From Macrostomum lignano (lineage: Eukaryota): a stretch of DNA of 44,651 nucleotides. Numbering within the stretch: the stretch's first letter is position 1; each line of letters opens with the position of its first letter. A model generated the notes under the pieces. It was not told where the DNA came from, did not search any database, and saw only the letters and a list, made by a program, of their open reading frames with translations. A program made the position numbers and the translations under genes. Shown here piece by piece: positions 18,651-37,817 of this stretch. Location: assembly GCA_002269645.1 (NCBI GenBank), contig NIVC01004479.1:1-44651 (forward strand), written 5' to 3'.

Positions 18651-21600
18651 ATGAGTCCGGACACCACTGCGACCGCAGTGAGTAGCAGTCTGCGCCGATT
18701 CTGCGACTACACAACTGCCCACGGACTTGGCAGATTCGGTGCACAGACCGGCAGATTCGGTCGCACAGTGTGGCTGTGTTTCCTGCTTGGCACCTACACC
18801 GGTTTCACCTATCACGTGTACACCTTGGTTGCTCATTTCGTCAGCACGCCATTGACTACTAGTCTGACCGAGTCGCTGCCTTTCAAGCTGCCAGATTTGT
18901 ACTTCTGTCCGAGCGATATTGTGCCGATGAGCCGAGTGAGCAAGCCGATCGATAGCGCCTCGGTGATGCGCAGCAGCTCATGCAATCGGATCTGCCGGGA
19001 GCGGCAGCTCGAGTTCGATATTGAGGAAGACTTTGAGGCTGGCAATGGTAGCAAGAAGACGAAATTCAGCGACGCCGCAATGGCTCTCTCGGACGCGTTC
19101 ATAGCTGCGGAGGAGGCGCTGGTGCAGGCGATGGTGTTTAAAAGCTCGGGTGAGTGGCAGATTGATATCCACCTACCGCTATGTAGCGTAAGTAGTTATA
19201 GAGTAGACTGTTCAACGTTAGACTACATGTATTTACAGGTGCTAGTGACTTTATTTAGTTAATTTTAATTCCAAAGTCTTTAAGGCAGAATAGCTCAGCG
19301 GTTGACGCTTTCGACTCTCGCGCCGAAAGGCCCGGGTTCGAATCCGCGCGCTATCAAAGATTAATTTGAATAATTTGAGAAAATTAGACTGGGTGCTTGT
19401 ACGATACTTGCGCATCAAGGCGACAGAGGACAGTGCGTGCTCAGGGGTCAGTGGGATTGCCACGACTGCTCACATTCTCGCCTGTCCTCCGTCGCCTTGG
19501 AACTGCCGCACTGCTCAAAGGCATTAATTATTTGGAAACGGGGCACCTTGAAGTCTTGATTTTGACAAAAATATTAATATGACAGCCAAGTATTAGTAGT
19601 AATAACAATTTTCACTTGTTTGTTCGGTGTAAAATACCGATATGTATCGAAAAAATATTTCGTAAAAAATTTCAAAATAACTTATCCGTATAACTCATTG
19701 TGGTTTACCGCCGATATGTATAGTAATACACTTTATAAAGGGTTTATTTTGCTTTCGCTACGCAGCCCATCCCAGCCAATGTCGAACCACAGTCGCCGGT
19801 GAAGAGTACACTGGCAACCGCAGCTGGGCAGTGGTGTACTCCTCCAGCTACCTGCCCGTGTCATCAGGCCCAGATGTCGCCGCCGCCAACGCCAAGCCGT
19901 TCTCAAATCGAGTGGCCTGCATTTCTTGGAATTCGGCCGCTCGAAAATTATTATCAAATTCGAACTATACTACTGAAGGTAATTCGACACTGAACTCTGA
20001 TTCTATGCGACTCGCTTATCGTCTGCTGGCTTTGAATTTGTCGGAAAACGACAACCGATGTCGACAACCAGTGGGTTTGCCACTGACAGAGTTTTACGGC
20101 ATCGCCATTCGTAAGTGTGCAAAGTTTATAGACTAATTTATAACAACCAGGGGTACTTTTAAGCGTCTGTTGGCACTAAGTTGATAGTAGCATACCCAAC
20201 CCCATAGACACCACCCTTATAATCCCCGTATTCCATAGACGCCACCCTTATAATCCCGATATCCCATAGACACCACCCTTATAATCCCCATATCCCATAG
20301 ACACCACCCTTATAATCCCCATATCCCATAGACACCACCCTTATAATCCTCGTATCCCATAGACCAACCCTTATAATCCCCGTATTCCATAGACACCACC
20401 CTTATAATCCCGATATCTCATAGACACCACCCTTATAATCCTCGTATCCCATAGACACCACCCTTATAATCCCCGTATTCCATAGACACCACCCTTATAA
20501 TCCCCATATCCCATAGACACCACCCTTATAATCCCCGTATTCCATAGACACCACCCTTATAATCCCCATATCCCATAGACACCACCCTTATAATCCCCAT
20601 ATCCCATAGACACCACCCTTATAATCCTCGTATCCCATAGACACCACCCTTATAATCCCCGTATTCCATAGACACCACCCTTATAATCCCCATATCCCAT
20701 AGACACCACCCTTATAATCCTCGTATTCCATGGACACCACCCTCATAATCCCCATATCCCATAGACATCGCCTTTATAATCCCCGTATCCCATAGACACC
20801 GCCCTTATAATCCCGAAATCCCATAGACATCGCTTTTATAATCCCTGTATCCCATAAACACCACGTACCACCCTTACAATCCACATCTCTCAAATCCCTT
20901 ACAACCCCATAGACACACATATAAAGTCAATAGGTGTACATCAACAAGGCATAAAAAGTATTTTAATGGCATTGAAACCGATGTATTTTAACAATGAATC
21001 ACCAACTGGACTAACAGACCCAATACAGGTGTACGCTGGTTGCTACAGCAGATCTGTCATCAGCACCATATTTTCCGAGCAATGCTCGTTTGATAGTACT
21101 CAAAACCTACTGACGCAAGAGCTATGCGCCGAATGCTGTTATAAAAAACTGTATACTCACATGGGTCTCTATTGGAATCAGTGCGTTTGCGGAAATGCAA
21201 CCTTGGCTTTGAGTACCAGCATTTGGTTCATGTCAAGTGACGAGAGTCAATGCTTCGACTCGTGTCCTGGCAACGAGAGTCAGGTGTGCGGCGGCTTTAT
21301 AGAATTTGCTAGCGTCTATCAACTGCGCAACAAAGGTGATTTTCCTTCTCTTGTGGTTTCTGCTAAGAAATTACAAAGCGACATGACAGAGCGTGAGGTG
21401 GGTGTAACTGTACACTGCGGGGTAGAGAGTAAGCTATTAATAGAACATCGAAGAGAGGTAATCCCCATAGGCGTGAGGTGGGTGTAACTGTACACTGTGG
21501 GGTAGAGAAGTGAGCTATTAATAGAACAAGGAAGAGAGGCAAGCTTCATGGGCTTGAGGTGTAATTACGCGTATCAAGGAATACGAGCGTATCTAGTGAT

Positions 21601-37817: not shown

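Follow-up and report, generated by a model that had tools for sequence, protein, structure and literature searches.

Can the gating domain of a DEG/ENaC channel carry whole binding modules of its own? The finger of these channels reads diverse stimuli, such as peptides in FaNaC and proteolysis in ENaC, and it forms part of the proton sensor in ASIC. The question is raised by a gene on contig NIVC01004479.1 of Macrostomum lignano (assembly GCA_002269645.1), of which we analyzed positions 1 to 44,651 of the forward strand; this whole stretch of 44,651 nucleotides is called the window below. An original prediction, made from the letters of the window, had described a DEG/ENaC subunit with two kringles and a WSC domain in its finger. 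We consider it probable that the gene encodes a DEG/ENaC subunit with a finger cassette of WSC and kringle-like modules, which may couple binding to the gate. The architecture itself is predicted with high confidence: a WSC domain nested in a first kringle-like module (K1) and followed by a second one (K2), all in the distal finger.

The interval 18651-37817 holds one intact gene on the + strand, with the start ATG at 18651 and the stop codon ending at 37817, and the predicted product is a DEG/ENaC channel subunit. The gene was rebuilt from stop-to-stop open reading frames (ORFs) together with all three reading frames of the regions 18.5-24.3 kb and 35.1-37.9 kb. Its 13 exons (Table 1) join in frame with GT-AG introns throughout, and the spliced ORF of 3285 nt encodes 1094 aa with no internal stop or frameshift. 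This independent splice gave a protein identical in length to the earlier 1094-aa model. Eleven of the 12 intron donors match GTRNGN or better, and most are GTGAGT or GTAAGT. The acceptor of exon 10 is ambiguous, as position 35936 yields 1094 aa and the alternative at 35894 adds 14 aa to give 1108 aa; the short form matches a 32-aa M. lignano exon (aa 740-771).

A word-indexed protein search with the draft model matched P0001, a M. lignano protein of 1052 aa (BOX15_Mlig007204g1, PAA82974.1) with the precomputed Pfam order ASC-WSC-ASC. It is 38-40% identical to the window protein, depending on the aligner. With candidates capped at 8000, this type of search gave at least one hit for the model and at least two for an alignment of the cassette. 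A tblastn comparison of P0001 with the window matched every one of the 13 exons in collinear order, so that the gene is not a chance assembly. Exon 9 was located in this way. An ORF at 35284-35342 that contains 'PWC' and looked like the end of a kringle was rejected, as it is another frame of exon 9.

The channel part was evaluated using the Pfam ASC profile (PF00858). The spliced protein scored 128.2 bits against a cut-off of 23.6, and profile positions 1-106 and 149-455 were covered. The first transmembrane segment (TM1, aa 39-63) and the second (TM2, aa 1019-1043) enclose a Cys-rich ectodomain in the single in-frame ORF, and the complete two-TM subunit of the original prediction was thereby recovered. 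The ASC part of the ectodomain contains 14 Cys, three in exon 1 and 11 after the cassette. The closest solved structures of the channel part were FaNaC1 and Aplysia FaNaC (8on7 and 7yvb; phmmer, E ~1e-10). The window sequence LMADMGGALGLWSGVSVLT aligns to FaNaC1 LVSDIGGQLGLWVGISLIT, with a G-V-S filter and Ala before D at the degenerin position. GVS in place of GAS and Ala at the degenerin site had been read before; both are legible in the sequence and fit the FaNaC alignment.

Exons 2-7 encode the cassette of 419 aa (residues 167-585), which lies between LPDLYFCP (aa 80-87) and IACSVGEATC (aa 618-627), where about 420 extra residues had been reported. It falls between ASC-profile positions ~106 and ~149. 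An alpha1-like amphipathic helix precedes it, and the amphipathic helix SIAGVIRDRIGGANLLRQFG follows it and leads into the beta-ball CxxxxxxC-DF motif. The profile gap and the helices predict that the cassette position is the alpha1-alpha3 interval of the finger; a place in the finger had been proposed before. The ectodomain has 16 N-glycosylation sequons, 11 of them in the cassette, which fits an extracellular position.

The WSC domain of the cassette was clearly recognized. Pfam WSC (PF01822; cut-off 27.8 bits) matched the exon-3 ORF alone with 35.9 bits (E = 8.7e-9) and the full model with 31.5 bits, over profile positions 1-82 and with 10 Cys, so that this domain call of the original prediction holds. 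When a structural model of the P0001 cassette was searched with Foldseek, the top match was the cysteine-rich domain (CRD) of yeast Wsc1 (7pz2; probability 0.99, 28% identity).

The order of the cassette is K1 Cys1-3 (exon 2), WSC (exon 3), K1 Cys4-6 (exon 4) and then K2 (exons 5-7). Its 22 Cys comprise 3 + 3 in K1, 10 in WSC and six in K2. Because the WSC exon sits between Cys3 and Cys4 of K1, the WSC domain is a nested insertion, an arrangement that was implied by the exon order given earlier and not spelled out there. Exons 2, 3 and 4 are all of phase 1-1. In the simplest history, exon shuffling probably placed the WSC exon into an intron of phase 1 that lay within a kringle. With the canonical kringle pairing (1-6, 2-4, 3-5), each of the three disulphides predicted for K1 would span the WSC domain.

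Channel and cassette are joined in one ORF in relatives of the window protein. The GenBank Mlig_3_7 models are filtered StringTie/TACO transcript assemblies from RNA-seq (PMC5730564). In at least four independent M. lignano models derived from RNA-seq (P0001, P0282, P0153, and P0157), a single ORF contains TM1, the cassette, and TM2. Since these GenBank models stem from RNA-seq, cassette and channel share one mRNA in the paralogues, and a separate nested gene is very unlikely. That exons 2-7 might belong to such a gene had been named as a finding that would speak against the predicted architecture; the paralogue ORFs, which run from ASC through the cassette to ASC, make it improbable.

A global alignment with P0001 showed no change in any of the 22 cassette Cys or in the motifs of pore and gating. 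The identity of the cassette (38%) matched that of the remaining ASC ectodomain (36%), indicating that the cassette is integral to the protein and has evolved under constraint. Its best-conserved piece was exon 4, the C-half of K1 (66%). Compared with P0001, the window protein has extra insertions of 14 aa in K1 and of 10 aa in K2, the latter within the YTG...C motif.

We performed an exhaustive phmmer search with the P0001 cassette against 1.84 billion cluster representatives and inspected the best 150 of 509 hits. Among these, nine clusters were covered beyond the WSC part (P0001, P0003-P0007, P0010, P0033, and P0068), all from M. lignano, and the clusters reaching the relevant end all carry ASC too. 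The remaining hits among the best 150 were generic multi-WSC proteins matching residues 113-210 only; the WSC part of the cassette matches hundreds of such proteins. The same order of TM1, cassette and TM2 is present in full-length P0153 (1091 aa), P0157 (1033 aa), and P0006. Identity among the paralogues is 33-48%; the window protein shares 39% with P0001 and 32-34% with the remaining paralogues. In M. lignano, the family comprises at least five diverged groups. The M. lignano homeologues compared differ by only 10 amino acids. No near-identical database protein was found for the window channel or for the septin-like gene next to it.

The relatives with this architecture include PAA82974.1/PAA59863.1 (BOX15_Mlig007204g1, Mlig028168g1), PAA47210.1, PAA86857.1, and UniProt entries named 'WSC domain-containing protein'. 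Like the window protein, they have TM1, the N-half of a kringle-like module, WSC, the C-half of that module, a second kringle-like module, the rest of ASC, and TM2, with all cassette Cys; they share only 30-39% identity with it. A M. lignano locus (L001; NIVC01000440.1, 10001-25409) carries a gene called as ASC-WSC-ASC. Some ten of its introns, among them every one next to a cassette exon, coincide in position with introns of the window gene. This gene has additional introns in exon 1 (~aa 100) and within the exon 6 of the window (~aa 485), lacks intron 11 of the window, and has one intron of 6.7 kb (13063-19782). No synteny between the two loci was visible; next to the L001 gene lie a protein kinase gene and one that is unannotated, but no septin.

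Several database models of the family are irregular. In P0068 (UniProt A0A1I8HMR1, M. lignano, 495 aa), WSC runs directly into K2, and the C-half and the first Cys region of K1 are missing; the model may be mis-predicted, or the protein may be a natural variant with a broken K1. P0006 (UniProt A0A1I8IV52, 1362 aa) begins with about 260 unrelated residues and has a frameshifted C-terminus. Older M. lignano models of the WormBase-ParaSite type are chimeric or fragmentary and are misnamed 'GON domain-', 'Mab-21 domain-' or 'Peptidase_M16_M domain-containing'.

The novelty of the architecture has to be restricted, because NCBI and UniProt already hold M. lignano entries with ASC and WSC under the automatic name 'WSC domain-containing protein'. 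In the literature, we found no paper that joins WSC or kringle with ENaC, degenerin or amiloride terms, or that names any of seven M. lignano gene ids. The architecture is machine-catalogued yet has no descriptive paper that we could find, and the family is so far confined to M. lignano proteins.

We then asked whether the modules flanking WSC are kringles. With the Pfam Kringle profile (PF00051; gathering threshold 34.3), K1 of the window protein scored 7.4 bits (E = 7) when WSC was removed, and K2 gave no match. Of seven paralogues, six gave sub-threshold matches of 10.6-22.7 bits, each located in the N-part of K2 (the exon 5 stretch), with E-values of 1.3e-4 to 0.76 against the whole Pfam library and for a hypothesis fixed in advance. 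P0154, which corresponds exactly to K2 of P0153, is named 'Kringle domain-containing protein' by the automatic rules of UniProt.

Kringle-like motifs are present in both modules, and the six Cys of each are invariant. K1 contains C-x8-Y-x-G, C-x-x-W, C-R-x-P, G-P-Y-C-F, and Y-C-N-V-P-x-C, and its exon 4 half aligns to GPWCFT...YCDIPRC of plasminogen. K2 contains R-Y-T-G-x5-T-x-S-G-x2-C-x-x-W, N-F-C-R, P-x-C, and C-x-I-x-x-C; its TPDx...NFCRxA is kept in all paralogues, and the Cys spacing in exon 7 is C-x12-C-x5-C, compared with the canonical C-x11/12-C-x4-C.

Profile comparisons mostly matched kringles. A K2 family profile gave 43 matches at E < 10 against all PDB sequences, and 41 of the 43 were kringles (best ROR1 and tPA, E = 0.014), aligned collinearly in the N-terminal, middle (NFCR with NYCRN), and C-terminal pieces. 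The two matches of the K1 family profile were both kringles. Using hhalign against five reference kringles, which Pfam confirmed as such with scores of up to 113 bits, the probability was 79% for K2 and 64% for K1 (E = 6.5e-5, exon 4 half), with alignments that span 22-23 columns only. K1 also aligns to K2 from Cys2 to Cys6 (E = 2e-4).

The modules were further compared with kringles by a global profile alignment that tolerates insertions, in which the insertion cost was independent of length and all parameters were fixed beforehand. Against shuffled sequences, K1 with WSC left in gave z = 5.7-7.3 and K2 gave z = 4.3-10. With the Cys positions fixed, z was 3.8-8.5, and none of 1000 shuffles reached the observed score. 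Control regions of the same protein (WSC alone, thumb, beta-ball region) gave z of 1.6 or less. In the traceback, the six Cys of K1 and the six of K2 fell on the six kringle Cys in canonical order; the three Cys of exon 2, invariant across the family, were set on Cys1-3, and WSC was inserted after CRNP and before GPWC, between columns 53 and 58 of the profile.

Neither module is a compact kringle of ~80 residues with canonical loops, as the loops are 2-10 times the canonical length. The insertions are of 10, 14, and 19 aa plus the whole WSC domain (~130 aa) in K1, and of 9, 12, 23, and 25 aa in K2. The acidic DxD of plasminogen-type, lysine-binding kringles is absent after CRNP, where the window protein reads CRQPVG and CRAARV, as had been noted before. 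This DxD defines the lysine-binding subclass of kringles only. Taken together, we lean towards the view that both flanking modules are kringle homologues, derived from kringles with greatly extended loops, and not canonical kringles.

How would such a cassette act? The subunit probably forms trimers that are permeable to Na+. In such a trimer, a lectin-like WSC and a kringle-like module would point outward from each finger, so that three sets would stand at the outer corners, where FaNaCs bind peptide and ENaC carries the GRIP domain. If a partner outside the cell (a glycan, matrix or a protein) binds there, the binding itself or a force transmitted via the bond could move the finger and, through it, the gate, and the role would be that of a mechanical tether or a ligand sensor. 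Gating coupled to glycans or matrix is a tentative proposal, held with low confidence. We regard as rather unlikely the bolder version of it, in which the family would form a new functional class of DEG/ENaC, with a lectin-type WSC in a disulphide-locked, kringle-like finger scaffold that binds glycans or matrix and passes binding or pull straight to the gate.

The cassette might instead be an autoinhibitory lid like ENaC GRIP, removed or loosened by proteases, and not a receptor for a ligand or tether. It sits on the finger helices at roughly the place that GRIP takes in ENaC and is big enough to cover the finger-thumb interface. However, no furin-type RX[KR]R site was found in the ectodomains of the window protein, P0001, P0153, P0157, and P0006, which disfavours ENaC-like proteolytic release in all five. 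Simple excision is also unlikely if the three predicted disulphides of K1 bridge WSC, and WSC and kringle are binding modules in the contexts in which they have been characterized (Wsc1, Kremen, and plasminogen). We therefore hold the lid to be quite improbable and prefer a cassette that would couple binding to the gate.

Several results weigh against this reading, and they bear on the kringle call, on the gene, and on the function. As for the kringle call, Pfam Kringle stayed below its threshold in the window protein and in every paralogue scanned (7-23 bits vs 34.3). An AlphaFold model of the P0001 cassette (predicted local distance difference test score, pLDDT, 59; shallow alignment) let Foldseek recover WSC and no kringle. 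A model of K2 alone (pLDDT 72) consisted of long beta-hairpins; it had no significant PDB match, and none of its 316 Foldseek matches was a kringle. Both structure predictions were made on M. lignano relatives and not on the window protein, from alignments of 8-10 closely related sequences.

These results would be expected if the flanking modules were lineage-specific, Cys-rich beta-hairpin modules that have only the short motifs YxGxxxxTxxGxxCxxW and GPxCFx...YCxxPxC in common with kringles, in which case the architecture would be just as real. The long loops and the 22-23 columns covered by hhalign also agree with this explanation. Yet the full-length profile alignment sets all six Cys of each module on kringle Cys and beats the 1000 Cys-fixed shuffles while the controls of the same protein fail, the PDB matches of the profiles are nearly all kringles, UniProt rules label one paralogue's K2 as a kringle, and the AlphaFold alignments were shallow. 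We thus rate non-homology as possible and the less favoured choice. Of the 'two six-Cys kringles' of the original prediction, the six-Cys frameworks and the kringle-like motifs are statistically real, but no copy reaches the Pfam threshold and neither AlphaFold model gave a kringle match in the PDB. Judged by the condition that the original prediction had set for profile searches, the window sequence supported ASC and WSC but not Kringle.

As for the gene, the RNA-seq support comes from models of M. lignano paralogues and not from the window gene itself, the donor of exon 8 (GTCGGC) is weak, and intron 8 is 10.9 kb long and full of repeats and transposable elements. The first point leaves room for a gene whose cassette is usually skipped by a direct splice of exons 1 and 8, or for a separate nested gene made up of exons 2-7. 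Exon 1 closes in phase 1, the phase in which exon 8 opens, and a transcript that skips exons 2-7 would keep its reading frame. P0068, which lacks the C-half of K1, indicates that variants or mis-models exist. On the other hand, no cassette exon has its own start or signal peptide, the phases chain only via exon 1 and exon 8, the four models named above each keep TM1, cassette, and TM2 in one ORF, and the cassette evolves at the rate of the channel ectodomain. Skipping or nesting therefore appears very improbable.

The weak donor and the intron would also be expected in a decaying or non-functional paralogue, whose ORF is intact by chance or which was recently disabled through the intron 8 laden with transposable elements; long terminal repeats (LTRs) that are 99% identical mark a recent insertion there. 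However, an ORF of 3285 nt over 13 exons has no stop or frameshift, conservation of the pore and gating motifs and of all 22 Cys of the cassette persists although identity to the closest relative is 39%, and the insertions are restricted to the intronic satellite. The length at the exon 8-9 junction agrees with P0001 residue for residue despite the weak donor. Decay of the window copy can hardly be expected, and an intact gene is preferred.

As for the function, we found no functional, expression or ligand data in the literature for any family member. Other M. lignano DEG/ENaCs, which are different genes from the window family, gave no peptide currents in oocytes (PMC9234716, Dandamudi et al.), and heterologous tests of this group can thus fail. 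This silence, seen for related flatworm DEG/ENaCs alone or co-expressed, would also suit a protein whose main role is that of a receptor for adhesion or recognition, or one that acts only as a regulatory partner in heteromers and does not conduct alone; the five or more diverged paralogue groups are compatible with heteromers. But the pore-lining TM2, the GxS filter, and the small residue at the degenerin site are conserved as in conducting subunits, and a non-conducting protein is considered improbable. A conducting subunit, which may be gated through its cassette, is retained as the favoured reading.

The features of the gene and of its largest intron are summarized in Table 1.

Table 1 Positions of the channel gene and of the elements in intron 8 within the window.
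Feature	Position	Strand	Description
Exon 1	18651..19149	+	aa 1-166; donor GTGAGT, phase 1; Pfam ASC profile positions 1-106
N-terminal HG motif (TTAHGLGRF)	18711-18737	+	in exon 1
TM1	18765-18839	+	in exon 1, aa 39-63
Post-TM1 motif LPDLYFCP	18888-18911	+	in exon 1, aa 80-87
Alpha1-like finger helix	19065-19133	+	in exon 1; amphipathic, FSDAAMALSDAFIAAEEALVQAM
Exon 2	19766..20110	+	aa 167-281; N-half of kringle-like module 1 with Cys1 (CRTTVAGEEYTGN), Cys2 (CISW), Cys3 (CRQP); phase 1-1
Exon 3	21018..21335	+	aa 282-387; WSC domain at 21029-21325, 10 Cys; phase 1-1
Exon 4	21673..21801	+	aa 388-430; C-half of kringle-like module 1, GPYCFY...YCNVPYC (Cys4-6); phase 1-1
Exon 5	22235..22459	+	aa 431-505; kringle-like module 2 with Cys1, RYTG...C-QPW motif, Cys2; phase 1-1
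Exon 6	22560..22704	+	aa 506-553; middle of kringle-like module 2, ETADYD...YCRAARV (Cys3); tblastn with P0001
Exon 7	23042..23136	+	aa 554-585; Cys4-6 of kringle-like module 2 (PVCPIETNKVVAFENCIWIKAC); phase 2 in and 1 out, compatible with exons 6 and 8
Exon 8	23865..24235	+	aa 586-709; helix SIAGVIRDRIGGANLLRQFG, beta-ball motif IACSVGEATCSSSDF, FGLCHRLD; ASC profile resumes at ~149; tblastn with P0001, E = 3e-20
Intron 8	24236..35147		10.9 kb; array of ~33-nt satellite with two inserted transposable elements
LTR retrotransposon	24887-29264	+	LTRs of 164 nt, 99% identical (24887-25050, 29101-29264)
Non-LTR (LINE-type) element	31130-34869	-	two ORFs overlapping by 4 nt: EEP endonuclease + reverse transcriptase (762 aa) and RNase H (484 aa); Pfam
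Satellite, period ~32-33 nt (GGCAGATAGAGATGGCAGTGAGGGTAGAG...)	24220-24900, 29200-31100, 34862-35125		higher-order units of 98 and 417 nt
Exon 9	35148..35350	+	aa 710-776; palm/beta-ball strands (VMVVPEG...GQHVELRLTYD...KPP..C); tblastn with P0001, 45% identity, E = 1e-11
Exon 10	35936..36043	+	aa 777-812; helical segment
Exon 11	36220..36751	+	aa 813-990; thumb (CIDAYKARRFLENCGCLP, CPPPCETLSYSISQAGSPWPG) and lower palm; Pfam ASC profile positions 291-383
Exon 12	37433..37514	+	aa 991-1017; pre-TM2 strand, degenerin-site Ala (L-M-A-D-M-G-G); tblastn with P0001, 59% identity; alignment to FaNaC1
Exon 13	37585..37817	+	aa 1018-1094; TM2 with G-V-S filter (ALGLWSGVSVLTACELIEL), cytoplasmic tail, stop; Pfam ASC profile positions 428-455

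The satellite of intron 8 hosts both transposable elements and yields long spurious ORFs on both strands. In the LTR element (LINE in Table 1 stands for long interspersed nuclear element), one ORF of 1001 aa encodes gag-protease, reverse transcriptase, and RNase H, and the integrase lies in the next frame (28076-28627); reverse transcriptase, RNase H, and integrase were matched by Pfam. It looks like a young insertion. Two other introns also contain simple sequences: a (CTAA)n microsatellite of about 400 nt is located in intron 4 (21816-22222), and a GA-rich low-complexity tract in intron 7 (23150-23800) produces the pseudo-ORFs 'REERREE' and 'SLLSSL'. Outside the gene, tandem-repeat arrays at 9192-13191, 16582-18446, and 37914-39377 contain ORFs of 100-500 aa (VSNRWV..., HLSHSQFTCHTAS..., GRQLQRG.../APATEG..., EISHIGNLSYWKSLIL...); these arrays look like satellites and not genes. 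A multi-exon septin-7-like gene is located upstream (2844-8124, +), with 159 bits for Pfam Septin on the exon at 4450-4956. Its best database matches are ~70% identical (Logan assemblies; parasitic flatworms such as Fasciolopsis).

A subfamily with binding modules recruited at the finger would be a case of exon shuffling in the evolution of a channel gating domain. WSC is a type of domain known from carbohydrate binding and mechanosensors, and kringle-like modules are of a protein-binding type. The nesting of WSC inside a kringle would, if true, itself be an undescribed domain arrangement. If the cassette is functional, the family would offer a natural test of the long-debated tether model for DEG/ENaC mechanotransduction; a channel with a built-in tether or glycan receptor would need no accessory matrix proteins. 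Even a cassette that is mere decoration would be a curious lineage-specific domain architecture. RNA interference is workable in M. lignano. Transgenesis and a published method for in situ hybridization are available as well (PMC5730564). With these three, the idea is directly testable in this species.

Among known channels, the FaNaCs (PDB 8ON7, 7YVB) are the best-scoring solved relatives, and their ligand site lies in the very interval that holds the cassette of the window protein. The alpha1-alpha3 helices build the FMRFamide pocket, and the interval measures 50-80 residues in FaNaCs and their flatworm sister branch (PMC11993918). It has no extra domains in FaNaC, in contrast to the ~420 extra residues in the window protein. 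ENaC resembles the window protein in that its finger helices bear an additional folded domain, GRIP, which sits on finger alpha1/alpha2 (PMC13488063) and controls gating. Unlike the WSC and kringle-like modules of the window protein, which has no furin sites, GRIP is a beta-sheet 'blanket' activated by furin-type cleavage.

To our knowledge, Kremen is the only well-known protein family that combines kringle and WSC. Kremen1/2 (kringle-WSC-CUB Wnt co-receptors; PDB 5FWS/5FWT) were also a low-probability Foldseek match of the cassette model. In Kremen, KR, WSC, and CUB follow in series on a single-pass receptor, whereas in the window protein WSC is nested, a second kringle-like module is present, and the host is a two-TM ion channel. 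No CUB was found above threshold in the window protein; the sole match (17 bits) was to a CUB-like family within the ASC region.

Mechanosensing is established for the WSC-bearing Wsc1 of yeast and has been proposed for polycystin-1. In both, WSC is exposed outside the cell, as predicted here, but it stands at the end of a stalk or of a long ectodomain and not in the gating domain of a channel. The MEC-4/MEC-10 channels of C. elegans, whose gating is thought to depend on extracellular matrix partners, are DEG/ENaC proteins with lineage-specific, Cys-rich additions to the ectodomain and, like the window protein, Ala at the degenerin site. Their additions, however, are neither WSC nor kringle, and they contact the matrix via the separate proteins MEC-1, MEC-5, and MEC-9.

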